From Carpediemonas membranifera BICM (Eukaryota; Protista; Fornicata), in the NCBI GenBank assembly GCA_019828565.1, contig JAHDYR010000053.1, forward strand, positions 1 to 64,000: a DNA stretch of 64,000 nt. Direction: 5' to 3'. Both the position numbers and the translations under genes were made by a program. Under the pieces are notes generated by a model. That model searched no databases and had not been told where the DNA came from. It saw only the letters and a list, made by a program, of their open reading frames with translations. Below, piece by piece: positions 5,636 through 43,136 of the stretch (the stretch's first letter is position 1; each line of letters begins with the position of its first letter).

Positions 5636-7195
5636 TCAAACAACAATTTCTGCTGGTATTGGTTTCTCATACAACGGCATCCATGGAAGAGTTGGTGTCC
5701 ACCGCAGAATATTGTTGTACGCGTACCACCGTTTGTTGAGTGGGTTGAACAGCCAGTAAGTGCTGGGGGACTTATCCATCAGTGTCACTGCATATTTTGA
5801 TGCCTCAAAGCGCGCAATAGCAGGAAACCCATGCGATTGTCTCGAAACCACAGTTTGTCTGCTCCCGCCGTCTACTCGCACATAGATAAGGACGTTGTTG
5901 GGCAATAGCACAAACTTGGAAAGTGGGTACAACCTATACACCTCATGTTCGCTGCAAGGAATCGGGTTTGGGTCCAAAAATAGAGATCGGACAATGTTGG
6001 GGATGAGTCGGGATCTACCGATGAGATAGCAATCATTGCCAGATCTAACGATCATAAACCTAGACTGTGCAACAAAGATGATTGCGTCGATCCAGACAGG
6101 TGTCCTCCTGAACCCCGGATGGGCGACATCCGTCATGTCATCAGCGGGAATATGACCAGTGGTATTACCGGTGAAGAACTGGGCTGGGACTATATTCTTT
6201 GTCTTGGATGCCCGGACCGTTCCGGACAAGATAACAAGTCCAGGCACGGCCCTGATCCCTCCAAGATTGACGGGAAGTTTCACCTTAGCAAACGAAGAGA
6301 ATCGGTGAGTGAGGGCCACATCGTGTCCAAACCAAGCCATCATATTAACGCCATACTCCTGAGAAGGCGCTGTAACGAGCACCCCGTGCATTGTGTGCAA
6401 CATGATGTAAGTGTTGCAGTGGCAGTCAAGAACAAATCGATGCCTGCACCACAGATGCATCTTGGCAAGCTTCTCAGCTATGGCTGCGGGGAAAACCGCC
6501 TGATGGACAGATGTAACACGAGCGAACCACAAGTTGCCAATGTAGAACGCCTTGCTGGTTGAGAAGAAGAAACACTTGCCATCAGACCAGAACCGCATGA
6601 TCCGGTGACGGAATGAACGATGATTGTCGTGGAAGACAAACCCACAATAATGCACGAGCTCTGATGCATCATAGCTCTTGATGACAGTCCGATCTCTCTT
6701 AGCAACACTATGTGAAAACATGAACTTCCTGCACATGAACCAGAGAGCGCTCGAGTCACCATCGGTCACCGTCCTCAGTATGGCCCACAACGTCCCTTGT
6801 ATAAGCGTGTGAAGACGGTCGGGCAGCGATTCGCCTTCGCGAAGCTGAACATCCATGCTTAGCTGTGGATGGCTTCGCAGTTTGATGACGCGAGAGAGAA
6901 TCCGGGCAACCTGCGATGCCTGATCCGAATTCTCAAGCTCTTGCGCGTGAAGACAAGCAAGCTGAAGCATGTCATCAAACGTCTCCAGGTCTTGAAAGAT
7001 GTGATAGAAATGCGAACGCGCAGGGAACATAAAGAAGACCCTTGTGGCTTGTTCTAAATAGCCCGGCAGGTTGTTGGGCAAAGTTTTGCACAGGACACAA
7101 GAGTTCCAGTAAAGGTCACAAACACTGAGCGACAATTGTCTGTGATTAGAATCAGTCATGTTCCCCCTATAGCTGTTCTTAAACTGCACTGCCAA
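5636..7195 (-). CDS. Hypothetical 519-aa protein; C-terminal half rich in short beta-strand/turn patterns (possible beta-propeller, RCC1/BLIP-II-like)
   Basis: Long ORF with repeated hydrophobic strand-Gly patterns (CFFFSTSKAFYIG, FMIVRSGNDCYLIG). The fold is inferred only. Confidence 0.45.
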   Translation of the reverse strand: MAVQFKNSYRGNMTDSNHRQLSLSVCDLYWNSCVLCKTLPNNLPGYLEQATRVFFMFPARSHFYHIFQDLETFDDMLQLACLHAQELENSDQASQVARILSRVIKLRSHPQLSMDVQLREGESLPDRLHTLIQGTLWAILRTVTDGDSSALWFMCRKFMFSHSVAKRDRTVIKSYDASELVHYCGFVFHDNHRSFRHRIMRFWSDGKCFFFSTSKAFYIGNLWFARVTSVHQAVFPAAIAEKLAKMHLWCRHRFVLDCHCNTYIMLHTMHGVLVTAPSQEYGVNMMAWFGHDVALTHRFSSFAKVKLPVNLGGIRAVPGLVILSGTVRASKTKNIVPAQFFTGNTTGHIPADDMTDVAHPGFRRTPVWIDAIIFVAQSRFMIVRSGNDCYLIGRSRLIPNIVRSLFLDPNPIPCSEHEVYRLYPLSKFVLLPNNVLIYVRVDGGSRQTVVSRQSHGFPAIARFEASKYAVTLMDKSPSTYWLFNPLNKRWYAYNNILRWTPTLPWMPLYEKPIPAEIVV

Positions 7196-25610: not shown

Positions 25611-28430
25611 TCACGTTTTACGATCAACCTCACTAAGGTCCGCGATCGTGCTGGAGCAAGCACTCCTCAATGCTGCTCCAGGCCTCAACGAGGCAACAGA
25701 AGTGCTGTAATCGAGGCGTAGGACGTCCTCGATATAGCGTATCAGTGATTTGGTATCCACCCAAGTGCCCTTCGCGGCCACGACGGGAATGGGTATGCCC
25801 GCAAGGACCAGGTCCGCCGCGCTGCCGCGGCGAAGGCCATGAAGCCTTGCCCTCGAGGAGCGAAGGATCCCCTTAATCTGGTCCTCAAGCTCCGAGAACG
25901 CAAAAGACCAGAGTGGATCCTCCTCCCCAGCGTGGGCGTCCATCCGATTAACGACGACCTCGGAGAGCCAATGCGCAGGGTCCAGCTCGCCATCGACCCT
26001 TGGTACCAGCTTCTCTATGACCTCACGCCGCGTCTTTGTGCCCTGTATTGCCACGCGCAGCCCTCGCCGACCATCAGTGGACACGTCCCTCATCCGCAAA
26101 GAGAATATCTCCATAGGCCGCGATGTGGTGGCGTAGATGGTGAGCGCGAAGGCGAACGCCTCTCTCCATAGGGCCTGCCGGCGGGCCTCCGGCGTGGAGG
26201 CGTGGAGTCTTGCAGCTAACATCTGGGCCCTGATGGGCAGGGCTGGGCCCCTCGGTCGACCAAGCGCGTCCCTCGCCTGCTCGATAACCACCGCCGTGCC
26301 GTCCACGGGGACCTCCCAGGGGACAACCCGGTCGAAGAACCTCACTATTAGGTTCCACTTCGACATGATGGTGGGGCGAGCCACCCTCTCCGCCTGGTCG
26401 TGTGCCCACATTCGAACGAGCTCGGTGTCGCCACGGGCCTCGGTGTGGCTGTCGCGGAAGTCAGCGAACTGCTGCAAGACCCCGGCCACGTGTCTCTTGT
26501 CCTTGAATCTGGCTAGCATGTCACTGCTGACGGCCTGGTCGAAGACCTGATGACCATGAAGAGGGCCATGAGCCTGAACGTCCCGTCCGACTGGAGCGGT
26601 GTGACCTCCGACAGGTCTGCCTCCTCCTTCCGAATCCTGAAGTAGAGCCGGTGCTCCGAGAGCTCTCTCAGTGCCATCGCTGTTGGAGAGCGGCTGTCCG
26701 ACACAAGCAAGACCAGAGCATCCGGACATGCTGAGGGGGAGCTGGGATGGTCCATCTGGAGGCGTTGCAACTTCGAATAGACCTCCAGCAGCAGGCTGAA
26801 CGGGACTACTGCCAGCCACCTGCCGACTGACCAGTCCTTGTCCATGAACTGTATGCTCCCGGAGGCCTCTGTCGCGTCCTGCTTTGCTCCAAGCCACCCG
26901 GAGGGCCATATCTCTCCTTGAACCGGGCCCCACGTCGTGATTATGCGCTCGAGCATCCGTCTGGGTGGTGATAATGTCTCGGATCGAGATAAGGCGTCGG
27001 CAGTGACGTTGAGGTGACCTGACACGTGCACGGCCCTGACCCTGATCTGTCGCCTGCTGAGCGTGGGCAGCAGGGCTCGGAGGGTCTGGTCCACCACCTC
27101 TGGCGCCTTTGTAGACCCCTGGTGGTTCCACCAGGCCACCGCCGCAACAGAATCCGAGAAGATAGTGATCTCGCTCGGGTCTCGAAGGTGTTGGAGAGTG
27201 AGCTCCACAGCCTGGCAGAGGGCTCGAAACTCTAGCAGGGTGATATGCTCCCCCTTCGGGGCCGAAACAGCGAAGGTGTGAGGGTCCTGGCCTGGGATCA
27301 GGAGGACGAGGCCGGCCTCCGAGGCGTCCGTCATCACCGTAACCTGAAGCTTCGGGGACATGCCCCACAAGTGGGTGAGCTCCAAGAAGCTGCGGACTGG
27401 GGAAGGGCGACTCAGGCGGGCTTGCCAATCGATGAGGGCCGCCTCTGCCTCGCCATGGACTCTCGTCCTGTATCGGGCCTTGATGTTGGCCAAGCAGCGT
27501 TGGATAGGCCTGATGGCCGCCCGGCCCTCTGGCCAGACTATCGACGCAAAGCCCAGGTTCCCGAGGAGTCTCTGCAGGCTGTGGAAGGTGACGCCCTGCT
27601 GGAGAGCCTCCTCCACTCTGGACAGGTACTTGTGGCGCTTCTCCTCCTGAAGGGAGACTCCATGCTTCCTCGAGTCGAGCACGAAGCCAAGGAAAGTCGT
27701 CGTGGGCGATGGTGTCAACTGGGATTTCTCCCGGTTGATTACGAGGCCTAGGTCCGTAAGCAACCGAACTATCCCCGGCATCGACGACTCTAACAGGGCT
27801 TTCGGACCGCAGAAAAGCCAGTCGTCTAGGTATATCGTCAGGTTGATACCCGGGAAGGCACGCGCGACAATCTGTCCGGCGGTCATCATGACCCGTTGAA
27901 AGTGGTAGGGTGCCGCGCTCCATCCAAACGGCAGGACGTTGAAGCAGTAGGGGCGCCCGTCTACCACAAAGCCCAGGAGTGTCCGGTCCTGCGGTCGGAT
28001 GCCCAGCTGATAGTACCCCTTCGTCAGGTCGATGCGCGTCATGTAGTCGTTCTCTCTCATCTGGCAGATGGCTTGCCTGACGTCTCGAAGCCGGAACGAC
28101 CTTCTCTCGAGCGACACTGCATTGAGTGACCTCAGATCGTGAATGAGGCGCGTCTCTACAGGTGTCTTCGGCACGGTGAAGATTGGCGAGATGAGACTCG
28201 GTGCCCGGCACGGGCTGGCCGCTCCCAAGGCGAGCAGCGTCCTTAGATGATCTCGGAAGGCCTTTCGATCCCTCGGCCGCGGTGAAGGAAGGCTGGGGTG
28301 CCTCGGCCGCGCACTCACCGAGATGGGGATACCCTCTCGTAGCCACAAGACCACCTCGGATGGCGCGTGTAAGCGCTCCCAAAGGGTCCAGCGGCTGTTG
28401 ATGCACGGGAAGGGTCTCATCTTCGGGCAC
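25611..28430 (-). CDS. DIRS tyrosine recombinase ORF (YR domain ~25611-26519; upstream part overlaps RT)
   Basis: TTSRPMEI (R), GTKT (K), HGLRRG (H-x-x-R), GTW-x7-RY (W, Y): full catalytic set present. Confidence 0.88.
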   Translation of the reverse strand: MPEDETLPVHQQPLDPLGALTRAIRGGLVATRGYPHLGECAAEAPQPSFTAAEGSKGLPRSSKDAARLGSGQPVPGTESHLANLHRAEDTCRDAPHSRSEVTQCSVAREKVVPASRRQASHLPDERERLHDAHRPDEGVLSAGHPTAGPDTPGLCGRRAPLLLQRPAVWMERGTLPLSTGHDDRRTDCRACLPGYQPDDIPRRLAFLRSESPVRVVDAGDSSVAYGPRPRNQPGEIPVDTIAHDDFPWLRARLEEAWSLPSGGEAPQVPVQSGGGSPAGRHLPQPAETPREPGLCVDSLARGPGGHQAYPTLLGQHQGPIQDESPWRGRGGPHRLASPPESPFPSPQLLGAHPLVGHVPEASGYGDDGRLGGRPRPPDPRPGPSHLRCFGPEGGAYHPARVSSPLPGCGAHSPTPSRPERDHYLLGFCCGGGLVEPPGVYKGARGGGPDPPSPAAHAQQATDQGQGRARVRSPQRHCRRLISIRDIITTQTDARAHNHDVGPGSRRDMALRVAWSKAGRDRGLREHTVHGQGLVSRQVAGSSPVQPAAGGLFEVATPPDGPSQLPLSMSGCSGLACVGQPLSNSDGTERALGAPALLQDSEGGGRPVGGHTAPVGRDVQAHGPLHGHQVFDQAVSSDMLARFKDKRHVAGVLQQFADFRDSHTEARGDTELVRMWAHDQAERVARPTIMSKWNLIVRFFDRVVPWEVPVDGTAVVIEQARDALGRPRGPALPIRAQMLAARLHASTPEARRQALWREAFAFALTIYATTSRPMEIFSLRMRDVSTDGRRGLRVAIQGTKTRREVIEKLVPRVDGELDPAHWLSEVVVNRMDAHAGEEDPLWSFAFSELEDQIKGILRSSRARLHGLRRGSAADLVLAGIPIPVVAAKGTWVDTKSLIRYIEDVLRLDYSTSVASLRPGAALRSACSSTIADLSEVDRKT
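26513..28420 (-). CDS. DIRS reverse transcriptase-RNase H
   Basis: RLIHDLRSLN, IDLTKGYYQ, LPFGWS, YLDDW (RT); TDASEAG, HITLLEFRAL, SDS, NVTADALSR (RNase H). Confidence 0.93.
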   Translation of the reverse strand: MRPFPCINSRWTLWERLHAPSEVVLWLREGIPISVSARPRHPSLPSPRPRDRKAFRDHLRTLLALGAASPCRAPSLISPIFTVPKTPVETRLIHDLRSLNAVSLERRSFRLRDVRQAICQMRENDYMTRIDLTKGYYQLGIRPQDRTLLGFVVDGRPYCFNVLPFGWSAAPYHFQRVMMTAGQIVARAFPGINLTIYLDDWLFCGPKALLESSMPGIVRLLTDLGLVINREKSQLTPSPTTTFLGFVLDSRKHGVSLQEEKRHKYLSRVEEALQQGVTFHSLQRLLGNLGFASIVWPEGRAAIRPIQRCLANIKARYRTRVHGEAEAALIDWQARLSRPSPVRSFLELTHLWGMSPKLQVTVMTDASEAGLVLLIPGQDPHTFAVSAPKGEHITLLEFRALCQAVELTLQHLRDPSEITIFSDSVAAVAWWNHQGSTKAPEVVDQTLRALLPTLSRRQIRVRAVHVSGHLNVTADALSRSETLSPPRRMLERIITTWGPVQGEIWPSGWLGAKQDATEASGSIQFMDKDWSVGRWLAVVPFSLLLEVYSKLQRLQMDHPSSPSACPDALVLLVSDSRSPTAMALRELSEHRLYFRIRKEEADLSEVTPLQSDGTFRLMALFMVIRSSTRPSAVTC

Positions 28431-29088: not shown

Positions 29089-29226
29089 TCTGATGACTTA
29101 TTTCGCTTCTCCTTCGTTCTCTGGGTTCCTGATTTGATCTGGTCCTGATTTGGCCTCAATCTGATGCGAATCAGAATGCCTCGACCGCTCAGCCGAAGAT
29201 TGTCCACTACGCTGGCCTTGCCAAAT

Positions 29227-29299
29227 GCTCCTTTAGCTCAGTTGGTAGAGCGTGTGATTAGTAATCACAAGGTCCTCGGTTCGAATCCGGGAGGGAGCA
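29227..29299 (+). tRNA. trnT: tRNA-Thr (anticodon AGT)
   Basis: GCTCCTT/AGGGAGC acceptor stem, GCTC/GAGC D stem, TGTGA-TTAGTAA-TCACA anticodon arm, CTCGG-TTCGAAT-CCGGG T arm, discriminator A; no encoded CCA; TTTT at 29303-29306. Confidence 0.97.
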
Positions 29300-32200
29300 A
29301 ACTTTTATGTAATCAACGACAAACAGTCTAGCGAGCGGCGAGGCGCAGCCGAGCTTCGCGAGCCTGAGCGCAGCGAAGCAGTTTGAGGCTATGGGGTGCG
29401 TCGGGGTCCTCCGTCGCTCCATCCAGTGAGTCGCTGGCGAGTCAACAAAACCAACAAGAACACTCTGAAGCGCTCTGCACGAGCCGATTGCTACACCAAT
29501 ATCAGAATTGAGTAACAATTAGTGGGAGAGGCCCAAATCCTCTGCTGCAGCATGTGCTGCGTCGCATTGCTTGATGAACGCTGCATATGTGTGCACTTGC
29601 CCTCTCATGCACGCCAAGAAAGCGTTATCAGCCATCTCGCGGACCTGCTCAGCCTTAAGACCAAGTTCATCGCGCAAATCGTCCGTCCAGCCCCTTCCGT
29701 GCACTCTTCCAACGTCACCGTTGTGAAGCGTCACCGCGGGTATGAGCTTGACGTCCCAGTTGGAGTACTGGGCGCGCTTGCTCGTCATGGCCTGAGACAC
29801 GTGGTTGCTGACGACGTTGTCAATGACGATTGCCTTCACGCCAGGTTTCGTGAGGAGGATGTCCGCCCGCGCCTTCATAGGCTTGGTCCGGTCAATGGTC
29901 CACTCACTGGCCTTGTTCAACCACACCTCGGACTGGACTCTCCAGCCATAACCCTTCAGGTCTCTCACCAGCCCGTCCTTGATAGCGTTGTGACGCTCGT
30001 CGTCCAGGCCTCCACGTAGGCATGGGCAGCACAGGGTGTGAGTAGCGTTGCACACAACGGACTGGTGGTTCACGGTGCGTGCCCTGCAGAGAGGGCAGAC
30101 GTCAAATCCGGGCGTGAATGCGGGGAGGCCCAGGTGATTGCGGAAGATGGGGGCAACAGCGGCATCGGTTACCGAGCGCCCAAGAGAGGTCGGGTCGACC
30201 ATCATGAACGACCGAACGACGTTGGGCGAGACGGCGGCACTCACAGAGAGCTTGGTGGCAATAGATTCCTCAACGAGGCGAACCAAGTTCTTCTGCGTGT
30301 GGTCGGCGTCAAGAGCCTTCACATCGTCCAAGCCACTAGGCCAGTTCGACGGCGTGTTGAGCTGGGGCGGGAGACACTTGATGGCACCCGTCACGCTGTC
30401 AGGTGAGCGTGTAACACCCAGCCCTGCCAGTTGTCTCGTGGCCGCGAGGAACGCGGGAGCCCACACGACTGATGGCATTGCCAGCGCAAGCCCGCGTCTT
30501 TCTACCGGCATACTCAGGCGGAGAGCAAAGTCGTCATCGACCTCAGCCTCGCTCGACAGGATTCGGAGGATGGCCGGGACCGCCTCTTTCTTCTCAAATC
30601 CGAGTTCAGCCTCGTAGAGACCGTTGCCGACTCCACCCGTTGCGGGGGGAACGTTACGGAAGAAGTGCTCCCACTTTGTGAGCGCACAATACTTCGCAAT
30701 GATCAACGCAGGGGCAGTTGCCTCCGGCCCCTCCTTGGCCACCATCTCTCCGGCAGCGTTAAGGAGTTGCATCACGCGACTGTTGACCTTGGCCAACTCA
30801 CCCATCGCATGAGCAGCGGACCCAACCGGAACGCCCACGAGGTTTAGGCTGCGTCTTCTTGGGACGCCTCCCGAGGTGTTGCCGTCGGTAACGTCTCTGT
30901 GCGCCACAACGCACTTCGACTTGTTGAGCCGCAGGCCGACTTCGAGGAACTTCTCCCTCGCGATCTCGACAAGGTTGTTAGCCTCTCGGCCGACACCGGG
31001 CGTCTGCAAAGGCCGATCAGTCGTGGCGACTAGATCGTCTTGGTACGCTTGGAGGTGCCAACCCGGGAACGCCTCGCGCAGAACGTCCAGAATGGGCTTG
31101 ATGCCCAGGCTGAACAGAATAGGGGACAGGGGATCTCCTTGATGTATGCCCTCAGCTGACCTTATCACTCCTCCTGACGTGGAGAATAGGAGCCCTTGGC
31201 GATACATCGTAGACAGGTAGGGCATGAGAGCAGGCATGTAAGCGCGTACCACGTCGAACATGAACGCCCTAGATAGGCATCCATAAGCGTTCGATAAGTC
31301 GAGGGAGACAACAGTCCCTCCCTCCTCGTAGACCCTGGTCACGCTGTCACTCAGCCTCTCCAGGCCGCACTTCTCCCCCACCCCATACTGATCCTTGAGG
31401 GTCCGGTCGACGTCGACCAGGCGGGCCCTCACAGCCCAGGCGAGAGCCTTCGCCGCAACCCGCCGAAGCGAGTCCCCGATGGCCACTCCTCGGATCTTCC
31501 CAGCCCCCTTGGGGACCGGGACAATGATGCAGTGGCTCAATACCGCGGTGTAGGTCTCGCCGTTCAGGATGTCCTGTACGATCGGCATCAATGCGGCGAT
31601 GAGGTCATGTCTGGCCACCTTCGCTGCTATTCTGATATGGAGGAAGGACAAGCCCGACGGCCCTGGGGCCGCCTCGGCCTTTAGAGCGTGTAGTACAGTC
31701 TTGAGGGTCCTAGCGGACACCTCAACTGACTGCAGTGGCTCTGCGGGGACGTCCTTAAACGGAACATCTGGGCGCAGGCCACTGTAATCCTCCTGCAGTC
31801 TCTTCAGCTCTACATCCACCTCCTGTGGTGACAGGCCCGCATCCTCAGCTACCAGCGCAGTGGCTGCCTTGGACACGAACCCGTGGCGAACCAGTCGCAT
31901 CACCTTACGCCACTTGGACGGGCGGCGCTTGGGGCCTTTCGATGCAACCGGCGGTGCGTACAGCGCCTTCGGGTACTCGAGTACCGTCCTCAGGGCCGCG
32001 CGCTTCTCGTCCTCGCTCTCCACGAGGGCCACCCGCTTGAGCTTCTCGATCAGGCCTCTGGCGAATTTCTCGCGTCCCCTCTTGGGGGGAGCGATCTTGC
32101 CAAGGAAGAGAGCCTGTCCCGGTGGTAGGAACACGTCGGGTCGATGGGCTGGGTGAGCGGGAGGGGCAGTCGGGGGGCTTGCGGTGAAGCCCACCGCGGT

Positions 32201-32733
32201 GACGTGCGCTGCTGCGCTCGGCTGCGATGACAGCTGGCTACCAGGGGCGTGGACCTCTTCGACAGATGGAAGGAGACTGGCAGGGTCGTTGTTGCCCATC
32301 ACGTTTCTCCTGATCTCTCGGAAGAATTCGGCCGCCACCGACGGAGCTGTTTTGGCAGAACGCAGCGGTGTTGCTTTGGGAGTACTGCTAAGAGTAACAC
32401 CCGCCGCGTCTAAGAGCCGCTTGAAGGAATCTACGATGTCCTTCAGTGCTCTCACCGTCAAACGCACAATCTTCTTGTTGTTCACGTCCTTCATCAGCTC
32501 GACGATGGCCGCTTCGGAGCACAGCGTATCAAACACTGTCTCTACATTGCACCAACGTGCGTCAATGAACTCAGCATTGACGAATTTCGCGTAGTCGGTA
32601 CGAACAGTCTGCAGCAGAAGCTGTACGTCCCGAGCAAGCGCGTTTTCGCGCCAATCGGACGTTATGGAAACTCTCATCGCCATCTGGCCTCCAGGATCAG
32701 CCTGGGGCGCAGAAAATGACGACATTTCCATTT
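29300..32733 (-). mobile_element. Site-specific RLE non-LTR retrotransposon, family A copy 1 (full length, intact ORF)
   Basis: Flanked by CGGGAGGGAGCA at 29288-29299 and 32734-32745; single ORF; no poly(A) tail. Confidence 0.93.
29519..32731 (-). CDS. RT + CCHC finger + restriction-like endonuclease (CRE/SLACS-like), family A, ~1070 aa
   Basis: AAPGPSG, IRGVAIGDSLRR, QYGVG, LDLSNAY, GIHQGDPLSPILF, AYQDD, GLRLNKSK (RT); CPLC-x12-HTLCC; RHNAI, SEV, RADILL-x8-IDNVV, SKRAQY (RLE). First ATG inside the element is at 32731. Confidence 0.92.
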   Translation of the reverse strand: MEMSSFSAPQADPGGQMAMRVSITSDWRENALARDVQLLLQTVRTDYAKFVNAEFIDARWCNVETVFDTLCSEAAIVELMKDVNNKKIVRLTVRALKDIVDSFKRLLDAAGVTLSSTPKATPLRSAKTAPSVAAEFFREIRRNVMGNNDPASLLPSVEEVHAPGSQLSSQPSAAAHVTAVGFTASPPTAPPAHPAHRPDVFLPPGQALFLGKIAPPKRGREKFARGLIEKLKRVALVESEDEKRAALRTVLEYPKALYAPPVASKGPKRRPSKWRKVMRLVRHGFVSKAATALVAEDAGLSPQEVDVELKRLQEDYSGLRPDVPFKDVPAEPLQSVEVSARTLKTVLHALKAEAAPGPSGLSFLHIRIAAKVARHDLIAALMPIVQDILNGETYTAVLSHCIIVPVPKGAGKIRGVAIGDSLRRVAAKALAWAVRARLVDVDRTLKDQYGVGEKCGLERLSDSVTRVYEEGGTVVSLDLSNAYGCLSRAFMFDVVRAYMPALMPYLSTMYRQGLLFSTSGGVIRSAEGIHQGDPLSPILFSLGIKPILDVLREAFPGWHLQAYQDDLVATTDRPLQTPGVGREANNLVEIAREKFLEVGLRLNKSKCVVAHRDVTDGNTSGGVPRRRSLNLVGVPVGSAAHAMGELAKVNSRVMQLLNAAGEMVAKEGPEATAPALIIAKYCALTKWEHFFRNVPPATGGVGNGLYEAELGFEKKEAVPAILRILSSEAEVDDDFALRLSMPVERRGLALAMPSVVWAPAFLAATRQLAGLGVTRSPDSVTGAIKCLPPQLNTPSNWPSGLDDVKALDADHTQKNLVRLVEESIATKLSVSAAVSPNVVRSFMMVDPTSLGRSVTDAAVAPIFRNHLGLPAFTPGFDVCPLCRARTVNHQSVVCNATHTLCCPCLRGGLDDERHNAIKDGLVRDLKGYGWRVQSEVWLNKASEWTIDRTKPMKARADILLTKPGVKAIVIDNVVSNHVSQAMTSKRAQYSNWDVKLIPAVTLHNGDVGRVHGRGWTDDLRDELGLKAEQVREMADNAFLACMRGQVHTYAAFIKQCDAAHAAAEDLGLSH

Positions 32734-32745
32734 CGGGAGGGAGCA

Positions 32746-35700
32746 AACTTTTATGTAATCAACGACAAACAGTCTAGCGAGCGGCGAGGCGCAGCCGAGC
32801 TTCGCGAGCCTGAGCGCAGCGAAGCAGTTTGAGGCTATGGGGTGCGTCGGGGTCCTCCGTCGCTCCATCCAGTGAGTCGCTGGCGAGTCAACAAAACCAA
32901 CAAGAACACTCTGAAGCGCTCTGCACGAGCCGATTGCTACACCAATATCAGAATTGAGTAACAATTAGTGGGAGAGGCCCAAATCCTCTGCTGCAGCATG
33001 TGCTGCGTCGCATTGCTTGATGAACGCTGCATATGTGTGCACTTGCCCTCTCATGCACGCCAAGAAAGCGTTATCAGCCATCTCGCGGACCTGCTCAGCC
33101 TTAAGACCAAGTTCATCGCGCAAATCGTCCGTCCAGCCCCTTCCGTGCACTCTTCCAACGTCACCGTTGTGAAGCGTCACCGCGGGTATGAGCTTGACGT
33201 CCCAGTTGGAGTACTGGGCGCGCTTGCTCGTCATGGCCTGAGACACGTGGTTGCTGACGACGTTGTCAATGACGATTGCCTTCACGCCAGGTTTCGTGAG
33301 GAGGATGTCCGCCCGCGCCTTCATAGGCTTGGTCCGGTCAATGGTCCACTCACTGGCCTTGTTCAACCACACCTCGGACTGGACTCTCCAGCCATAACCC
33401 TTCAGGTCTCTCACCAGCCCGTCCTTGATAGCGTTGTGACGCTCGTCGTCCAGGCCTCCACGTAGGCATGGGCAGCACAGGGTGTGAGTAGCGTTGCACA
33501 CAACGGACTGGTGGTTCACGGTGCGTGCCCTGCAGAGAGGGCAGACGTCAAATCCGGGCGTGAATGCGGGGAGGCCCAGGTGATTGCGGAAGATGGGGGC
33601 AACAGCGGCATCGGTTACCGAGCGCCCAAGAGAGGTCGGGTCGACCATCATGAACGACCGAACGACGTTGGGCGAGACGGCGGCACTCACAGAGAGCTTG
33701 GTGGCAATAGATTCCTCAACGAGGCGAACCAAGTTCTTCTGCGTGTGGTCGGCGTCAAGAGCCTTCACATCGTCCAAGCCACTAGGCCAGTTCGACGGCG
33801 TGTTGAGCTGGGGCGGGAGACACTTGATGGCACCCGTCACGCTGTCAGGTGAGCGTGTAACACCCAGCCCTGCCAGTTGTCTCGTGGCCGCGAGGAACGC
33901 GGGAGCCCACACGACTGATGGCATTGCCAGCGCAAGCCCGCGTCTTTCTACCGGCATACTCAGGCGGAGAGCAAAGTCGTCATCGACCTCAGCCTCGCTC
34001 GACAGGATTCGGAGGATGGCCGGGACCGCCTCTTTCTTCTCAAATCCGAGTTCAGCCTCGTAGAGACCGTTGCCGACTCCACCCGTTGCGGGGGGAACGT
34101 TACGGAAGAAGTGCTCCCACTTTGTGAGCGCACAATACTTCGCAATGATCAACGCAGGGGCAGTTGCCTCCGGCCCCTCCTTGGCCACCATCTCTCCGGC
34201 AGCGTTAAGGAGTTGCATCACGCGACTGTTGACCTTGGCCAACTCACCCATCGCATGAGCAGCGGACCCAACCGGAACGCCCACGAGGTTTAGGCTGCGT
34301 CTTCTTGGGACGCCTCCCGAGGTGTTGCCGTCGGTAACGTCTCTGTGCGCCACAACGCACTTCGACTTGTTGAGCCGCAGGCCGACTTCGAGGAACTTCT
34401 CCCTCGCGATCTCGACAAGGTTGTTAGCCTCTCGGCCGACACCGGGCGTCTGCAAAGGCCGATCAGTCGTGGCGACTAGATCGTCTTGGTACGCTTGGAG
34501 GTGCCAACCCGGGAACGCCTCGCGCAGAACGTCCAGAATGGGCTTGATGCCCAGGCTGAACAGAATAGGGGACAGGGGATCTCCTTGATGTATGCCCTCA
34601 GCTGACCTTATCACTCCTCCTGACGTGGAGAATAGGAGCCCTTGGCGATACATCGTAGACAGGTAGGGCATGAGAGCAGGCATGTAAGCGCGTACCACGT
34701 CGAACATGAACGCCCTAGATAGGCATCCATAAGCGTTCGATAAGTCGAGGGAGACAACAGTCCCTCCCTCCTCGTAGACCCTGGTCACGCTGTCACTCAG
34801 CCTCTCCAGGCCGCACTTCTCCCCCACCCCATACTGATCCTTGAGGGTCCGGTCGACGTCGACCAGGCGGGCCCTCACAGCCCAGGCGAGAGCCTTCGCC
34901 GCAACCCGCCGAAGCGAGTCCCCGATGGCCACTCCTCGGATCTTCCCAGCCCCCTTGGGGACCGGGACAATGATGCAGTGGCTCAATACCGCGGTGTAGG
35001 TCTCGCCGTTCAGGATGTCCTGTACGATCGGCATCAATGCGGCGATGAGGTCATGTCTGGCCACCTTCGCTGCTATTCTGATATGGAGGAAGGACAAGCC
35101 CGACGGCCCTGGGGCCGCCTCGGCCTTTAGAGCGTGTAGTACAGTCTTGAGGGTCCTAGCGGACACCTCAACTGACTGCAGTGGCTCTGCGGGGACGTCC
35201 TTAAACGGAACATCTGGGCGCAGGCCACTGTAATCCTCCTGCAGTCTCTTCAGCTCTACATCCACCTCCTGTGGTGACAGGCCCGCATCCTCAGCTACCA
35301 GCGCAGTGGCTGCCTTGGACACGAACCCGTGGCGAACCAGTCGCATCACCTTACGCCACTTGGACGGGCGGCGCTTGGGGCCTTTCGATGCAACCGGCGG
35401 TGCGTACAGCGCCTTCGGGTACTCGAGTACCGTCCTCAGGGCCGCGCGCTTCTCGTCCTCGCTCTCCACGAGGGCCACCCGCTTGAGCTTCTCGATCAGG
35501 CCTCTGGCGAATTTCTCGCGTCCCCTCTTGGGGGGAGCGATCTTGCCAAGGAAGAGAGCCTGTCCCGGTGGTAGGAACACGTCGGGTCGATGGGCTGGGT
35601 GAGCGGGAGGGGGCAGTCGGGGGGCTTGCGGTGAAGCCCACCGCGGTGACGTGCGCTGCTGCGCTCGGCTGCGATGACAGCTGGCTACCAGGGGCGTGGA

Positions 35701-36180
35701 CCTCTTCGACAGATGGAAGGAGACTGGCAGGGTCGTTGTTGCCCATCACGTTTCTCCTGATCTCTCGGAAGAATTCGGCCGCCACCGACGGAGCTGTTTT
35801 GGCAGAACGCAGCGGTGTTGCTTTGGGAGTACTGCTAAGAGTAACACCCGCCGCGTCTAAGAGCCGCTTGAAGGAATCTACGATGTCCTTCAGTGCTCTC
35901 ACCGTCAAACGCACAATCTTCTTGTTGTTCACGTCCTTCATCAGCTCGACGATGGCCGCTTCGGAGCACAGCGTATCAAACACTGTCTCTACATTGCACC
36001 AACGTGCGTCAATGAACTCAGCATTGACGAATTTCGCGTAGTCGGTACGAACAGTCTGCAGCAGAAGCTGTACGTCCCGAGCAAGCGCGTTTTCGCGCCA
36101 ATCGGACGTTATGGAAACTCTCATCGCCATCTGGCCTCCAGGATCAGCCTGGGGCACAGAAAATGACGACATTTCCATTT
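32746..36180 (-). mobile_element. Family A copy 2 (full length; +1 G in a G-run at ~35610 splits the ORF)
   Basis: Near-identical to copy 1; bounded by the 12-mer at 32734-32745 and 36181-36192; ORFs 32965..35580 and 35351..36193. Confidence 0.92.
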
Positions 36181-36192
36181 CGGGAGGGAGCA

Positions 36193-39100
36193 TCGTTTAT
36201 TGCCTTTTGGACGAACTGTATTGCGAGCGGCGAGGCGCAGCCGAGCTTCGCGAGCCTGAGCGCAGCGAAGACGTCACTCTAGTGGTCAGTATGTCGGGTT
36301 TGAGGCACTGCTCGCTCCGAAATCTCCCTTTCGACTCTCCACTCAGTCACAACGAACGCGAACGCGAATAACGCGCAGATCACGCTCAAAGTACAGAAAC
36401 AACATCAGTATTAGTGGTTGAGGCCATTAGCCTCAGCTTGACGGTGCGCAGCATCCGCCTGGCGCATGAACGCATGGAACACATGAACTTGCTGCCGCAT
36501 ACAGGCCATCATGACCGCGTCGGCAATCTGCCCAACAGTTTCGGCATCAAGGCCCAAAACGTCGCGCATCTCATCGGTCCATCCTCTCCCATGCACAGCA
36601 CCAACACCACCACTCTGGCGAACGACCACGGGAATAACCCGGACGTTCCAGTTGGCGTACTGCTCCTTCTTGCTCCGCATAGATGCAGACGCGTGATTGC
36701 TCACCACTACGTCAAGCACAACGGGTTCGGTATGGCCCGGTCTGGTCAAGAGGAGGTCCGCCCGCGCCTTGACCCGTTTGGTCCGGTCCACAGTCCACTC
36801 GCTGCCCCGTCCGAGCCAATGCTCAACTCTTACGCGCCAGGGGTGCCCGCGCAGCAGTTTGGCGAGCGTGTCGCGAATTTGGTCGTGCCGCTCCGATCCC
36901 AGCCCCTCCCTCAGGAAGGGACAGGTAAGAGAATGCTCGGCTGAGCAGGGGACAGACCGGTGGTTAACACTACGGGCCAGGCATAGCGGACAGACGTCGT
37001 GGCCTGTCTCAAAGGCAGGAAGGCCGACATGGTTGCGAAGCATCGGTGCAGCACCCTCGTCACAGGGGTTACGACCCATAGCGGCTGGATCAGCCGCGAG
37101 TAGAGACCTGATCACGTTTGGCGAGTCGACTGAAACAGTCAGTTGGCTGGAAATGTTATCCTGCAGGAGGCGTACCAACTTCTTCTGCGTGCTCTCGAGT
37201 GAGAGCTTTCTGACATCGCCATATGATGTCGGCCAATCCTTGGGCGTCGCGGCGAGAGCCGGGATGCATGGCAGTGCGTCTTGGATGAGAGCCTCGGGCC
37301 TTTCGACCTTCAGCTCTATGAGTTGTCGTGCGGCACCCAGATAGGCTGGGGCCCACACAACAGAGGGCATGGCCAATCCGAGCCCGCCTTGACTGACCGG
37401 CAGACAGAGCCTTGCGGCGAAGTCCTTGTCAGTCTCTGCGCTGGACTGGAGCAGCTTCAGGATGGCGGGGACCACCTTCTGCTGTTCGAAGTCCAGTTGC
37501 GACTCGAACATGTCACCCCCGCCCGGCGAAACATTGCGGAAGAAGTGCTCCCACTTGGTGAGGGCACACAGTTTCGTCACTAGGAGGGCAGGGGCGACGG
37601 CTTCCGCGCCAATGTCAGAGACCATCGATGCAGCAGCGTCAAGCAGCTCCATAACCTTGCGGTTAGCAGAGCCTAGCTCCCGCATGATGTGCGTGGCGGA
37701 GCCGATTGGAACACCAACCAGCTTGGTATCGCGTCTCCGTGGGACGCCACCAGTTGTGTTGCCGTCAACGACATCCTTATGGGCTAGCACGCACTTGGTA
37801 CGGTTGAGGCGGAGGCCAACCTCGTTGAACTTCTGAGCGGCGAGTTCTGTGAGATTGTTGGCCTCACGGCCGACCCCAGGCGACTGTAGCGGGCGGGTAG
37901 TGGTGGCTACAATGTCATCCTGGTAGGCACGGATGCACCACCCAGGGAAAGCCTCGCGCAAGACGTCCAGAATGGGCTTAACGCCTAAGCTGAAAAGAAT
38001 TGGCGAGAGCGGGTCCCCTTGGTGAATGCCTTCAGCCGACCTCATGGTGATGCCGGAGGTAGAGAAAAGTAAGCCCCGTCGGTACATGGTCGACAGGTAT
38101 GGGATGAGCGCCGGCATGTAGGCCGCCACCACCTTCATGGCGAAGGCCCTCGACAAGCATCCATAGGCGTTGGAAAGGTCGAGTGTGAGCACTGTACCGC
38201 CACTTCGGTAGACTGCACTCACCTCCTCTCCCAACCTCTCCAAGCCGCACTTCTCACCTACTCCGAACTGGTCCTTCAGGGCACGATCGACGTCAACCAG
38301 CCGCTTACGGACGGACCAGGCGAGTGCCTTTGCCGCCACACGGCGAATAGAGTCGCCGATCGCGACCCCTCGGACCTTCCCTTCACCTTTCGGCACAGGG
38401 ACGAGAATGCAATGACTGAACACATCAGTGTAAGCTTCTCCGTTCAGGATGTCCTGAACCAGCGGGAGCAGAGCCTGGACTAGTTCGCGCCTTGATGTCT
38501 TGTAGGCGATCTTCAGGTGAAGGAACGATAGCCCGGAGGGCCCCGGGGCCGCCTCAGACTTGAGTGTGTTGAGGATGGTCTTCAGAGTCTTAGAGGAAAC
38601 TTCGACACACTGCAGGGGGTTCTCGGGGACGTCTCGCATGGGGACGTCGGGACAAAGCCCGTTGAACCCAACCTGGAGGTCCCGCAGTTGAGCGTCGATT
38701 TCAGTCGGTGTCAGGTCAGTCTCATTGGCTACCATGGACGTGGCGGCCTTCGAGACAAACCCGTGGCGAATCAGGTTCAGCGTCCGACGCCACTTGCTCG
38801 CGCTAGCGCGTCGTCCGCCTCGGTCCGACGGCGGTGCGTACAGCGTCTTGGGGTAGTCTACAACCTTAAGAGCCTCAGCCCGCTTGGCGTCGTCACCTGT
38901 CGCGTTGTTCACCTCCCTCAATCGTTCAATAAGGCCTCGTGTGAACTTCTCGCGCCCGCGCTTGGGCGGAGCGATCTTTCCGAGGAACAAGGCCTGACCC
39001 GGGGGAAGGAAGACATCGGGTCGATGAGCAGGGGTAGTGGGAGGTGCTGATGGCGGGGTTAGGGGGAAACCAACCGCCGAAACGTGAGCTGCCGTGTCTG

Positions 39101-39635
39101 CCTGGACCTCTTCGTCAACAGGCTGCGATGACAGACCCTCGTCGTCCGTCGCGATCTCTACTGCAGAGGGAGGGACATTTGCAGCGGTCTCTGGACGCAT
39201 AGCGTTGTCTCGTATCGTGCAGGCGATAATCGCAATGGACTTGGGGGCTGTGTTTGCAGAACGCAACGAAGTTGCCGTTGGCAGCGCCTGTGTGGTGATG
39301 CTGTGGGCCTTAAGGAGGTCCTTGAAGCTGTCAGCAATCGCCTTCAGGGCTTTCACGGTAAAGCGTACGATGTGTTTGTTCTGGACGTCGCGCATGAGCT
39401 CGACAACCGCAGTTTCAGAGCACAATGTGTTGAACACCGTGTCCGTATCACACCACAGTCTGTCAATTAGGCTTATGTCGACGAACTTCGCGTAGGTGCT
39501 ATGAACTTCGGTAAGAAGAGCACGAACATCCTCGGCGAAGACGCTTTCGCGCCATACGAGTCTCGTACGTCGTCGAGTCACCATCTGGCCTCCAGGATCA
39601 GCCTGGGGCGCAGAAAATGACGACATTTCCATTTT
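36193..39635 (-). mobile_element. Site-specific RLE non-LTR retrotransposon, family B copy 1 (full length, intact ORF)
   Basis: Bounded by the 12-mer at 36181-36192 and 39636-39647; colinear with A but clearly diverged. Confidence 0.93.
36411..39632 (-). CDS. RT + CCHC finger + RLE, family B, ~1073 aa
   Basis: Same motif set as A (GIHQGDPLSPILF, AYQDD, CPLC-x12-HSLTC, RHDQI, RADLLL, LDVVV, SKKEQY). In-element ATG at 39632. Confidence 0.92.
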   Translation of the reverse strand: MEMSSFSAPQADPGGQMVTRRRTRLVWRESVFAEDVRALLTEVHSTYAKFVDISLIDRLWCDTDTVFNTLCSETAVVELMRDVQNKHIVRFTVKALKAIADSFKDLLKAHSITTQALPTATSLRSANTAPKSIAIIACTIRDNAMRPETAANVPPSAVEIATDDEGLSSQPVDEEVQADTAAHVSAVGFPLTPPSAPPTTPAHRPDVFLPPGQALFLGKIAPPKRGREKFTRGLIERLREVNNATGDDAKRAEALKVVDYPKTLYAPPSDRGGRRASASKWRRTLNLIRHGFVSKAATSMVANETDLTPTEIDAQLRDLQVGFNGLCPDVPMRDVPENPLQCVEVSSKTLKTILNTLKSEAAPGPSGLSFLHLKIAYKTSRRELVQALLPLVQDILNGEAYTDVFSHCILVPVPKGEGKVRGVAIGDSIRRVAAKALAWSVRKRLVDVDRALKDQFGVGEKCGLERLGEEVSAVYRSGGTVLTLDLSNAYGCLSRAFAMKVVAAYMPALIPYLSTMYRRGLLFSTSGITMRSAEGIHQGDPLSPILFSLGVKPILDVLREAFPGWCIRAYQDDIVATTTRPLQSPGVGREANNLTELAAQKFNEVGLRLNRTKCVLAHKDVVDGNTTGGVPRRRDTKLVGVPIGSATHIMRELGSANRKVMELLDAAASMVSDIGAEAVAPALLVTKLCALTKWEHFFRNVSPGGGDMFESQLDFEQQKVVPAILKLLQSSAETDKDFAARLCLPVSQGGLGLAMPSVVWAPAYLGAARQLIELKVERPEALIQDALPCIPALAATPKDWPTSYGDVRKLSLESTQKKLVRLLQDNISSQLTVSVDSPNVIRSLLAADPAAMGRNPCDEGAAPMLRNHVGLPAFETGHDVCPLCLARSVNHRSVPCSAEHSLTCPFLREGLGSERHDQIRDTLAKLLRGHPWRVRVEHWLGRGSEWTVDRTKRVKARADLLLTRPGHTEPVVLDVVVSNHASASMRSKKEQYANWNVRVIPVVVRQSGGVGAVHGRGWTDEMRDVLGLDAETVGQIADAVMMACMRQQVHVFHAFMRQADAAHRQAEANGLNH

Positions 39636-39647
39636 CGGGAGGGAGCA

Positions 39648-40226
39648 AACTTTTATGTAATCAACGACAAACAGTCTAGCGAGCGGCGAGGCGCAGCCGA
39701 GCTTCGCGAGCCTGAGCGCAGCGAAGCAGTTTGAGGCTATGGGGTGCGTCGGGGTCCTCCGTCGCTCCATCCAGTGAGTCGCTGGCGAGTCAACAAAACC
39801 AACAAGAACACTCTGAAGCGCTCTGCACGAGCCGATTGCTACACCAATATCAGAATTGAGTAACAATTAGTGGGAGAGGCCCAAATCCTCTGCTGCAGCA
39901 TGTGCTGCGTCGCATTGCTTGATGAACGCTGCATATGTGTGCACTTGCCCTCTCATGCACAATCTTCTTGTTGTTCACGTCCTTCATCAGCTCGACGATG
40001 GCCGCTTCGGAGCACAGCGTATCAAACACTGTCTCTACGTTGCACCAACGTGCGTCAATGAACTCAGCATTGACGAATTTCGCGTAGTCGGTACGAACAG
40101 TCTGCAGCAGAAGCTGTACGTCCCGAGCAAGCGCGTTTTCGCGCCAATCGGACGTTATGGAAACTCTCATCGCCATCTGGCCTCCAGGATCAGCCTGGGG
40201 CACAGAAAATGACGACATTTCCATTT
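39648..40226 (-). mobile_element. Family A internally deleted copy (579 bp)
   Basis: Both A ends joined at a GCAC microhomology (39957-39960); bounded by the 12-mer at 39636-39647 and 40227-40238. Confidence 0.92.
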
Positions 40227-40238
40227 CGGGAGGGAGCA

Positions 40239-43118
40239 TCGTTTATTGCCTTTTGGACGAACTGTATTGCGAGCGGCGAGGCGCAGCCGAGCTTCGCGAG
40301 CCTGAGCGCAGCGAAGACGTCACTCTAGTGGTCAGTATGTCGGGTTTGAGGCACTGCTCGCTCCGAAATCTCCCTTTCGACTCTCCACTCAGTCACAACG
40401 AACGCGAACGCGAATAACGCGCAGATCACGCTCAAAGTACAGAAACAACATCAGTATTAGTGGTTGAGGCCATTAGCCTCAGCTTGACGGTGCGCAGCAT
40501 CCGCCTGGCGCATGAACGCATGGAACACATGAACTTGCTGCCGCATACAGGCCATCATGACCGCGTCGGCAATCTGCCCAACAGTTTCGGCATCAAGGCC
40601 CAAAACGTCGCGCATCTCATCGGTACATCCTCTCCCATGCACAGCACCAACACCACCACTCTGGCGAACGACCACGGGAATAACCCGGACGTTCCAGTTG
40701 GCGTACTGCTCCTTCTTGCTCCGCATAGATGCAGACGCGTGATTGCTCACCACTACGTCAAGCACAACGGGTTCGGTATGGCCCGGTCTGGTCAAGAGGA
40801 GGTCCGCCCGCGCCTTGACCCGTTTGGTCCGGTCCACAGTCCACTCGCTGCCCCGTCCGAGCCAATGCTCAACTCTTACGCGCCAGGGGTGCCCGCGCAG
40901 CAGTTTGGCGAGCGTGTCGCGAATTTGGTCGTGCCGCTCCGATCCCAGCCCCTCCCTCAGGAAGGGACAGGTAAGAGAATGCTCGGCTGAGCAGGGGACA
41001 GACCGGTGGTTAACACTACGGGCCAGGCATAGCGGACAGACGTCGTGGCCTGTCTCAAAGGCAGGAAGGCCGACATGGTTGCGAAGCATCGGTGCAGCAC
41101 CCTCGTCACAGGGGTTACGACCCATAGCGGCTGCATCAGCCGCGAGTAGAGACCTGATCACGTTTGGCGAGTCGACTGAAACAGTCAGTTGGCTGGAAAT
41201 GTTATCCTGCAGGAGGCGTACCAACTTCTTCTGCGTGCTCTCGAGTGAGAGCTTTCTGACATCGCCATATGATGTCGGCCAATCCTTGGGCGTCGCGGCG
41301 AGAGCCGGGATGCATGGCAGTGCGTCTTGGATGAGAGCCTCGGGCCTTTCGACCTTCAGCTCTATGAGTTGTCGTGCGGCACCCAGATAGGCTGGGGCCC
41401 ACACAACAGAGGGCATGGCCAATCCGAGCCCGCCTTGACTGACCGGCAGACAGAGCCTTGCGGCGAAGTCCTTGTCAGTCTCTGCGCTGGACTGGAGCAG
41501 CTTCAGGATGGCGGGGACCACCTTCTGCTGTTCGAAGTCCAGTTGCGACTCGAACATGTCACCCCCGCCCGGCGAAACATTGCGGAAGAAGTGCTCCCAC
41601 TTGGTGAGGGCACACAGTTTCGTCACTAGGAGGGCAGGGGCGACGGCTTCCGCGCCAATGTCAGAGACCATCGATGCAGCAGCGTCAAGCAGCTCCATAA
41701 CCTTGCGGTTAGCAGAGCCTAGCTCCCGCATGATGTGCGTGGCGGAGCCGATTGGAACACCAACCAGCTTGGTATCGCGTCTCCGTGGGACGCCACCAGT
41801 TGTGTTGCCGTCAACGACATCCTTATGGGCTAGCACGCACTTGGCACGGTTGAGGCGGAGGCCAACCTCGTTGAACTTCTGAGCGGCGAGTTCTGTGAGA
41901 TTGTTGGCCTCACGGCCGACCCCAGGCGACTGTAGCGGGCGGGTAGTGGTGGCTACAATGTCATCCTGGTAGGCACGGATGCACCACCCAGGGAAAGCCT
42001 CGCGCAAGACGTCCAGAATGGGCTTAACGCCTAAGCTGAAAAGAATTGGCGAGAGCGGGTCCCCTTGGTGAATGCCTTCAGCCGACCTCATGGTGATGCC
42101 GGAGGTAGAGAAAAGTAAGCCCCGTCGGTACATGGTCGACAGGTATGGGATGAGCGCCGGCATGTAGGCCGCCACCACCTTCATGGCGAAGGCCCTCGAC
42201 AAGCATCCATAGGCGTTGGAAAGGTCGAGTGTGAGCACTGTACCGCCACTTCGGTAGACTGCACTCACCTCCTCTCCCAACCTCTCCAAGCCGCACTTCT
42301 CACCTACTCCGAACTGGTCCTTCAGGGCACGATCGACGTCAACCAGCCGCTTACGGACGGACCAGGCGAGTGCCTTTGCCGCCACACGGCGAATAGAGTC
42401 GCCGATCGCGACCCCTCGGACCTTCCCTTCACCTTTCGGCACAGGGACGAGAATGCAATGACTGAACACATCAGTGTAAGCTTCTCCGTTCAGGATGTCC
42501 TGAACCAGCGGGAGCAGAGCCTGGACTAGTTCGCGCCTTGATGTCTTGTAGGCGATCTTCAGGTGAAGGAACGATAGCCCGGAGGGCCCCGGGGCCGCCT
42601 CAGACTTGAGTGTGTTGAGGATGGTCTTCAGAGTCTTAGAGGAAACTTCGACACACTGCAGGGGGTTCTCGGGGACGTCTCGCATGGGGACGTCGGGACA
42701 AAGCCCGTTGAACCCAACCTGGAGGTCCCGCAGTTGAGCGTCGATTTCAGTCGGTGTCAGGTCAGTCTCATTGGCTACCATGGACGTGGCGGCCTTCGAG
42801 ACAAACCCGTGGCGAATCAGGTTCAGCGTCCGACGCCACTTGCTCGCGCTAGCGCGTCGTCCGCCTCGGTCCGACGGCGGTGCGTACAGCGTCTTGGGGT
42901 AGTCTACAACCTTAAGAGCCTCAGCCCGCTTGGCGTCGTCACCTGTCGCGTTGTTCACCTCCCTCAATCGTTCAATAAGGCCTCGTGTGAACTTCTCGCG
43001 CCCGCGCTTGGGCGGAGCGATCTTTCCGAGGAACAAGGCCTGACCCGGGGGAAGGAAGACATCGGGTCGATGAGCAGGGGTAGTGGGAGGTGCTGATGGC
43101 GGGGTTAGGGGGAAACCA
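40239..43118 (-). mobile_element. Family B copy 2, lacking ~560 bp of its 5' end (ORF 40457..43036)
   Basis: Near-identical to B1 up to GGGGGAAACCA (43118), then unrelated sequence; no closing 12-mer. Confidence 0.9.
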
Positions 43119-43136
43119 CATACTGTGAAAGTCGGC

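Follow-up and report, generated by a model that had tools for sequence, protein, structure and literature searches.

A threonine tRNA gene in the assembled genome of Carpediemonas membranifera BICM (GCA_019828565.1) is followed by a stack of long antisense units, and a copy of the last 12 nucleotides of the gene recurs between one unit and the next. The locus thus raises the question of what these units are and how they come to lie exactly at the end of a tRNA gene that remains whole. The stretch of DNA analyzed, referred to as the window, comprises positions 1 to 64,000 of contig JAHDYR010000053.1 (C39). Coordinates without a contig name are positions in this 64,000-nt window, and array architecture was read from the assembled contigs. 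The units fall into two families, A and B, which are very probably autonomous retrotransposons without long terminal repeats (non-LTR) of the restriction-like endonuclease (RLE) type, each with a single open reading frame (ORF), integrating by target-primed reverse transcription (TPRT) exactly at the 3' boundary of the tRNA-Thr(AGT) and tRNA-Thr(CGT) genes. The parts of the system in the window are given below, with the source of each assignment in brackets.

29227-29299, plus strand: tRNA-Thr(AGT) gene, intact, target of the elements (ARAGORN; Rfam tRNA model, 69.3 bits).
29288-29299, plus strand: original copy of the 12-mer CGGGAGGGAGCA, tRNA positions 62-73 (exact match search).
32734-32745, 36181-36192, 39636-39647, and 40227-40238, plus strand: recurrences of the 12-mer as target-site duplications (exact match search).
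29300-32733, to 32745 with its 12-mer, minus strand: element A1, full length, 3' end abutting the tRNA discriminator base (repeats, BLAST).
29519-32731, minus strand: A1 ORF, 1070 amino acids, intact, ATG at 32731 and stop at 29519 (ORF reading).
32746-36180, to 36192 with its 12-mer, minus strand: element A2, full length (BLAST).
36193-39635, to 39647 with its 12-mer, minus strand: element B1, full length (BLAST, Pfam).
36411-39632, minus strand: B1 ORF, 1073 amino acids, intact, ATG at 39632 and stop at 36411 (ORF reading).
39648-40226, to 40238 with its 12-mer, minus strand: A-mini, an internally deleted A copy of 591 bp including its own 12-mer (BLAST).
40239-43118, minus strand: element B2, corresponding to positions 576-3455 of B and interrupted at 43118/43119 (BLAST).
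29331-29378, 32777-32824, 36223-36270, 39679-39726, and 40269-40316, minus strand: 48-nt block of the 3' untranslated region (UTR) (sequence comparison).
43119-64000 in the window (about 23.6 kb in all, 43119-66693), no strand assigned: foreign insertion splitting B2, outside the element system, beginning with CATACTGT.

The tRNA gene is the only one in the window, called by ARAGORN as tRNA-Thr(AGT) at 29226-29300, with the gene limits set by sequence at 29227-29299, and is identical to four other copies in the genome. Its terminal 12-mer has five exact matches in the window, compared with 0 in 100 shuffles, and the plus strand directly after each match is the reverse complement of an element 3' end, either of type A (AACTTTTATG...) or of type B (TCGTTTATTGCC...). 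Repeat finding and BLAST gave unit lengths of 3446, 3447, 3455, and 591 bp, followed by a piece of 2880 bp. Every unit occupies the minus strand, antisense to the tRNA, and poly(A) tails are absent throughout; the 12-mers are the only repeats flanking a unit, and there are no terminal repeats. In every full-length copy, the ATG stands 2 nt past the 12-mer. An earlier note, made from the letters of this DNA, had described the five 12-mer sites, each preceding an antisense 3' end that lacks poly(A), as well as two intact ORFs, and both descriptions were reproduced, with the ORFs being those of A1 and B1. Between A1 and A2 there is one substitution, and in A2 an additional C in a C-run, possibly an assembly error, splits the ORF. 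In A-mini, a 4-nt GTGC microhomology marks the point where ~280 bp of the A 5' end meet 313 bp of the 3' end. The same note had placed the end of the system at 43118, which is wrong: B2 is merely split there by the 23.6-kb insertion, and its missing 575 bp and 12-mer are found beyond the window at C39:66694-67267, after which the array resumes with more units to at least 77 kb. The larger ORFs of the insertion had no Pfam match.

Is the end of this tRNA gene an accidental neighbor of the units or their regular site? In the 24.2-Mb genome, tRNA-Thr(AGT) is encoded by five identical genes and tRNA-Thr(CGT) by two, and all seven are directly followed by an element 3' end. The adjoining element belongs to family A at all five AGT loci and at the CGT locus on C68, and to family B at the CGT locus on C3. 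Upstream flanks differ between most of these loci, which are therefore separate sites, and the tRNA-element junction is identical at six loci having different upstream flanks. As had been proposed from the window, the insertions leave the tRNA intact, the gene being whole and unchanged at all seven loci. A check of the tRNA-Thr(AGT) loci for filled and empty alleles, also proposed at that time, found all five filled and no empty allele. The choice of tRNA-Thr(AGT) as the target holds for these five genes, but the target is wider than the earlier note supposed, as tRNA-Thr(CGT) is included.

The CGT loci also reveal the origin of the 12-mer. The tRNA-Thr(CGT) gene ends in CGGAAGGGAGCA, one base off the AGT version. 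On C68, this CGT variant follows the full-length A copy adjacent to the tRNA and then also a 224-bp 5'-truncated B copy, and it is found at all three of the junctions nearest to the CGT tRNA. Further 5'-truncated copies ending in the 12-mer lie at C1:54575, C1:605331, and C19:43402, and truncated copies keep intact 3' ends. Given the CGT variant behind a CGT tRNA and the 12-mer at the ends of truncated copies, the 12-mer must be derived from the target and arise anew with each insertion. It is therefore a genuine duplication of the target site rather than the element's 5' end, which upholds the origin first suggested for it. The whole genome contains 65 copies of the 12-mer versus 5 of a reversed control, and when the call to check all copies was followed up for A-type 3' ends, 34/34 genome-wide were preceded by the 12-mer or its CGT variant. 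In the 264 kb of the genome that were read, each array 12-mer is bordered either by element copies on both sides or by a tRNA on one side and an element on the other, and all of the junctions found to non-element DNA are tRNA-Thr genes. The earlier note had pointed to copies away from tRNA sites that still carry the 12-mer as a sign that it is part of the element. Array pieces lacking a tRNA do have the 12-mer, but always between element copies and never beside unique DNA. Two simpler notions were rejected. The same truncated copies and the CGT variant at the CGT tRNA speak against the 12-mer as a part of the element, and the tRNA is not taken for cargo of the element since only 12 bp of it recur inside the arrays.

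The proteins of both families are of the kind expected from RLE-type non-LTR elements. RVT_1 of Pfam was matched at E 1.7e-14 in A and 2.3e-13 in B, and the YxDD active site is YQDD at residue 563 in A and 570 in B. The C-terminal part of A1 contains a CCHC motif (879-894) followed by the RLE motifs RHN (913), RAD (955), VIDNVV (969), and KRAQY (985). In A and B and across an alignment of 24 relatives, the series CPLC-x6-H-x4-C, RH(N/D), RAD, (V/I)xD, and KxxQY is conserved, a pattern of CCHC plus PD-(D/E)XK restriction-like endonuclease from which a nuclease is predicted. Between A and B, identity amounts to 62% for the protein and about 67% for the DNA. An AlphaFold model of the A protein (mean predicted local distance difference test [pLDDT] 81.8, predicted template modeling score [pTM] 0.75) had R2 retrotransposon proteins as its top Foldseek matches (E 6e-22 to 4e-17), with R2Bm and R2Tg aligning to model residues of about 232-1064 (ends at 1057-1064), i.e. 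through the nuclease region; LINE-1 ORF2p had a similar score with fewer aligned residues. By sequence, R2 proteins were likewise the only solved relatives, matched weakly (E 2e-4), and the nuclease part alone had no match in a sequence search against solved structures. The assignment to two families of RLE-type non-LTR elements made in the earlier note is thus borne out by the RVT_1 matches, the CCHC and RLE motifs, and the R2-like predicted structure. The N-terminal region is another matter. Residues 1-300 include two Cys, with no Cys/His pattern and no Pfam match there, and a zinc finger is absent from both A and B. Neither a zinc-finger or Myb signature nor a Pfam match nor a recognizable fold was found in the first 200 residues, and the region had no usable match in the ESM Atlas. 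Its model is helical and of low confidence (pLDDT 59), with the best fold match (Z 6.4) being among generic helical bundles. A and B therefore lack the known targeting domains (zinc finger, Myb), a feature that we present as new.

How would such elements insert without damaging the gene? The hallmarks of TPRT are all present: fixed 3' ends, variable 5' truncation, a 12-bp duplication, and no terminal repeats. By analogy with R2, the endonuclease would nick the tRNA-sense strand directly after position 73, and the freed 3'-OH at this position would prime cDNA synthesis at the 3' end of the element RNA. The opposite strand would be cut 12 bp upstream, between tRNA positions 61 and 62, and repair would yield a whole tRNA plus an extra 12-mer. 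Later insertions at the restored tRNA end would then displace older copies outward, with unequal recombination and segmental duplication remodeling the stacks afterward. This geometry, one nick after the discriminator base and the other 12 bp upstream, had been put forward in the earlier note; the junctions fit it, whereas the nicks themselves are modeled upon those of R2. The extreme 3' ends do vary slightly, with B having either TCG or CAG and A either T4 or T5, and such variation fits imprecise initiation of reverse transcription. The 48-nt block begins 31 nt from the element 3' end and is identical in A and B, whereas the remaining UTR is about half identical. There are 68 copies of it in the genome (62 exact), corresponding to about 68 element 3' ends, with a few diverged copies elsewhere having 2-3 changes. 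Among candidates for an RNA signal recognized by the reverse transcriptase, the block is the best. Alternatively, it may act as promoter of the next unit, the ATG of which stands about 45 nt downstream of it.

Insertion at this site also replaces the sequence downstream of the tRNA. Native tRNA trailers in the genome begin with ATTTT or GATTTT, and the trailer supplied by the element on the tRNA strand is AACTTTT for A and TCGTTTATTGCCTTTT for B. The tRNA-Thr genes must still be expressed, because there is no unoccupied gene of these isoacceptors, and judging from these trailers, the T-run of the element probably allows RNA polymerase III to terminate, keeping the tRNA-Thr functional. Two further observations concern sequences near tRNA genes. 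The motif GAGCTGACGTCTC recurs at a distance of 2-3 nt upstream of several unrelated tRNA genes, those for Phe, Val, and Gly and one for Thr (L008-L010, L017, L002), and could be either the end of another tRNA-targeting element or a polymerase III upstream motif. A separate element with the end GCTAGCTGTCCTAGCC follows several tRNA genes at a distance of 17-40 bp; it is also found within A-type 3' ends, 25-36 bp inward.

The insertions have grown into large arrays on at least eight contigs (C1, C6, C19, C24, C39, C54, C61, and C68), with lengths of at least 63 kb (C1) and 52 kb (C6). Coordinates alone served to map those on C24, C54, C61, and C68, the remainder of C39, and the P0166-type arrays described below. 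Full-length copies differ by 0-19 substitutions per 3.45 kb, a near-identity that would reflect either recent activity or homogenization. The reading frames are apparently broken in most copies. Many of these breaks may be assembly errors, because comparison of the copies gave 60 indels, of which 47 affect a single base of a homopolymer run; the indel that splits A2 is of this kind. Some units are shortened or composite. B-mini (about 400 bp, both ends kept, flanked by the 12-mer) occurs at C6:1115193-1115592, 1136118-1136519, and 1154422-1154821, and both B-mini and A-mini may be non-autonomous passengers or mere duplicated array blocks. The tRNA-proximal unit at C1:482193-484245 is a chimera with its 3' part from A (1700-3446) and its 5' part from B (1-307), which fits template switching or recombination between A and B. 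Other transposons have inserted into the arrays, and at tRNA and array loci such transposons are seen from window position 43119 onward, at C6:1107793, at C68:15162, and in the L013/L014 trailers.

Several observations weigh against repeated TPRT at the tRNA end as the source of these arrays. No empty tRNA-Thr site exists in the genome (7/7 filled), leaving the pre-insertion target and its native trailer unseen, and the 3' UTR folds no more stably than its shuffles (z -0.02 to +1.78). A block of A, B-mini, and A occurs three times on C6, about 20 kb apart, and such higher-order repeats indicate that part of the array growth there is duplication and not new insertion. Array pieces with no adjoining tRNA are found at C1:50-57 kb and on C54, C61, and C8. 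Lastly, the arrays on C68 and C1 mix the AGT and CGT variants of the 12-mer, and therefore recombination between arrays has to be invoked. The alternative that survives best builds upon these features. It holds that the stacks arose mainly from unequal crossing-over, segmental duplication, and inter-array exchange after one or a few insertions per locus, rather than from repeated retrotransposition. The triplicated C6 block, the mixed 12-mers, and the arrays without a tRNA all speak for it, as do the near-identity of the copies and the 591-bp 12-mer spacing of A-mini, which is seen again at C39:72741-73332 behind an A-type 3' end at 72753 (by coordinates only). We consider this a serious contender that nevertheless falls short of being probable. 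Seven loci with different flanks each require at least one independent insertion, the three CGT-type junctions nearest to the C68 tRNA are as expected for successive local insertions, and the independent 5' truncation points, each with its own 12-mer, represent separate insertion events. Moreover, such a process complements retrotransposition and does not replace it. From the repeated multi-unit blocks and the mixed 12-mer variants it is clear that the stacks owe their form to duplication and inter-array exchange as well, alongside the insertion by TPRT that we favor.

Much less credible is an element-borne 12-mer, whether as a tRNA-complementary 5' leader, a primer-binding-like site, or a co-transcribed target as in some R2. 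Its position 2 nt upstream of the start codon in every full-length copy would suit this idea, as would its presence in arrays lacking a tRNA and the AGT variant at the distal junctions of the array at the CGT locus. However, the 12-mer is kept by 5'-truncated copies that have no element 5' end, the CGT variant adjoins the CGT tRNA despite AGT-type donors being about ten times more common, and no copy was seen with the 12-mer beside unique DNA, all of which makes this reading very improbable. Least plausible of all is that the arrays are long-read assembly artefacts of a repeat. In favor of this are the 47 homopolymer indels among 60, which are typical of uncorrected long-read errors. However, such errors hit the reading frames and not the architecture, on at least eight contigs the A, B, mini, and truncated units follow one another in an order peculiar to that contig, with transposon interruptions likewise peculiar to it, and the tRNA-element junction is the same at six loci with different upstream flanks.

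The threonine genes are not the only tRNA genes of this genome that adjoin RLE elements. In 6/6 tRNA-Ala(AGC) genes read, nucleotide +1 marks the exact end of an element that encodes a reverse transcriptase (RT) and RLE and has about 27% identity to A. It has the same orientation as the tRNA and the end ...GATGATTAAA, and both the tRNA and its native ATTTT trailer are intact. These are loci L013-L018 (on C63, C48, C26, C8, C6, and C4), with the element at ~1-1493 of the oriented locus in the tRNA sense. A P0166-like RLE group, about 40% identical to A and composed of several subfamilies that are 55-100% identical to P0166, forms large same-strand arrays (C65:582-634 kb, C6:1744-1779 kb, C11:65-105 kb, C15, C52, C26:1129-1141 kb, and C54:254-268 kb), and at C6, C11, and C26 its last ORF stops about 200 bp upstream of a same-strand tRNA gene. 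Among relatives outside this genome, sampled at eight loci in six records (L052-L059), none adjoins a tRNA or other Rfam gene. Thus, no tRNA targeting is seen in the outside relatives sampled. The closest of the latter, at 35-38% identity, are L055 (Logan SRR31444219, a 3485-bp contig) and L056 (GCA_002919055.1, PPCM01001310.1), which are arranged head to tail with the junction motif GCAATAAA(A/G)ACGA-CACCG-ATGGAA, i.e. a short CACCG junction. Their 3'-terminal GCAATAAA..CGA resembles the family B 3' end, and an AAUAAA-like hexamer is found at the end of all of the elements in this comparison. At L052, (AGCC)n microsatellite borders P0002 (26% identity) on either side, around 5700-5830 and 9430-9550, which suggests a microsatellite-specific member of the same broad lineage.

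Of the characterized systems, R2 of Bombyx mori (R2Bm) and Taeniopygia guttata (R2Tg) is the best structural match over residues of about 232-1064 (PDB 8gh6, 9nl3, 9dou, and 8ibw). A and B resemble R2 in having a single ORF with RT, linker, CCHC, and C-terminal RLE, in their strict specificity for a multicopy RNA gene, and in lacking poly(A). They differ from it in target, which is a tRNA-Thr gene boundary rather than the 28S rDNA, in leaving the gene undisrupted with a duplication of 12 bp, in having neither the N-terminal zinc finger nor the Myb domain by which the R2 clade binds its target, and in being antisense to the target gene. R2 is co-transcribed with the rRNA, whereas co-transcription of A and B with the tRNA is impossible because of this antisense orientation. 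The TRE5 and TRE3 elements of Dictyostelium and Ty1 and Ty3 of yeast use tRNA genes as integration landmarks, inserting at a distance from the gene via polymerase III factors rather than at a fixed nucleotide. The Dada DNA transposons likewise use tRNA genes as integration sites (PMC3706591). With all of these, A and B share the use of a tRNA gene as a safe or marked site, although, unlike Dada, they are retrotransposons.

Within the RLE elements, the nearest precedents in target are those placed near the NeSL clade, namely NeSL-1_TV of Trichomonas vaginalis, specific for tRNA-Pro (Kojima and Jurka 2015, PMC4640811), and the planarian LIN15_SM (tRNA-Arg) and LIN25_SM (tRNA-Glu) (PMC4640811). 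Like A and B, these are RLE-type elements specific for one tRNA gene family, and Trichomonas is another metamonad. According to the supplement of that study, the LIN15_SM and LIN25_SM junctions lie inside the tRNA, with the element 3' end followed by the middle of the gene, which is disrupted (PMC4640811); the A and B junction, in contrast, falls exactly after position 73 and the gene is whole. The earlier note, which took such a target to be undescribed for CRE-like families, overstates the novelty, tRNA-specific RLE elements having been published; tRNA-Thr itself is absent from the published NeSL-related targets (PMC4640811). The CRE group (CRE1/CRE2, SLACS, and CZAR) is similar in being RLE-type, site-specific, and found in protists, but it targets spliced-leader genes. 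GilM and GilT of Giardia, a fornicate relative of Carpediemonas, belong to the CRE clade and form telomeric tandem arrays (PMC10088271), and these too are arranged head to tail. The only hint toward the CRE clade is the NCBI name 'SLACS' carried by P0023, a Carpediemonas paralogue 40% identical, and no Giardia or trypanosomatid protein was among the named database matches, almost all matches being metagenomic. A literature search turned up no paper dealing with non-LTR elements of Carpediemonas or with tRNA-Thr as a target.

A further feature lies upstream of tRNA-Thr genes. About 800 bp upstream of the tRNA-Thr in the window (25611-28430, minus strand) are two overlapping ORFs in different frames, one with RVT_1 (E 1.5e-19) and the other with a weak match to Phage_integrase (tyrosine recombinase), and a 65%-similar copy of the pair lies at C19:38906-40867, upstream of the C19 tRNA-Thr. 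From these domain matches, the pair looks like a DIRS-like retrotransposon.

Both tRNA-gene-specific RLE elements and the targeting of multicopy RNA genes are already known. What is new here is that A and B sit precisely at the gene boundary without destroying the gene, that they run antisense to it, that a 12-bp duplication rebuilds it, and that no target gene has been left free. R2 and other site-specific RLE retrotransposons are under development for break-free gene insertion, and the known natural targets are few. Judged by the predicted cut, A and B would be useful in this respect, as they would insert at one defined nucleotide in a multicopy gene that is small and conserved and is left intact, and their stacks indicate that dozens of successive insertions are apparently tolerated. 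Since they have none of the usual zinc-finger or Myb domains, they may reveal another mode of reading a DNA target, and the sister families at other tRNA boundaries constitute a natural series for the change of target specificity. A broader view, which we offer tentatively and consider rather doubtful as a whole, is that Carpediemonas harbors a radiation of RLE families, each located at the exact first or last nucleotide of one undamaged tRNA gene (for instance, an antisense family at the Thr 3' end and a sense-oriented one at the Ala 5' end), with a targeting module that is neither zinc finger nor Myb, and that host polymerase III genes might have come to depend upon element-supplied flanks because every tRNA-Thr and tRNA-Ala(AGC) gene seen is occupied. 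The system allows one to ask whether a host can come to depend on element sequence for the start or termination of tRNA transcription. If this were true, an element-supplied terminator or upstream region would make the relationship an obligate association rather than plain parasitism.

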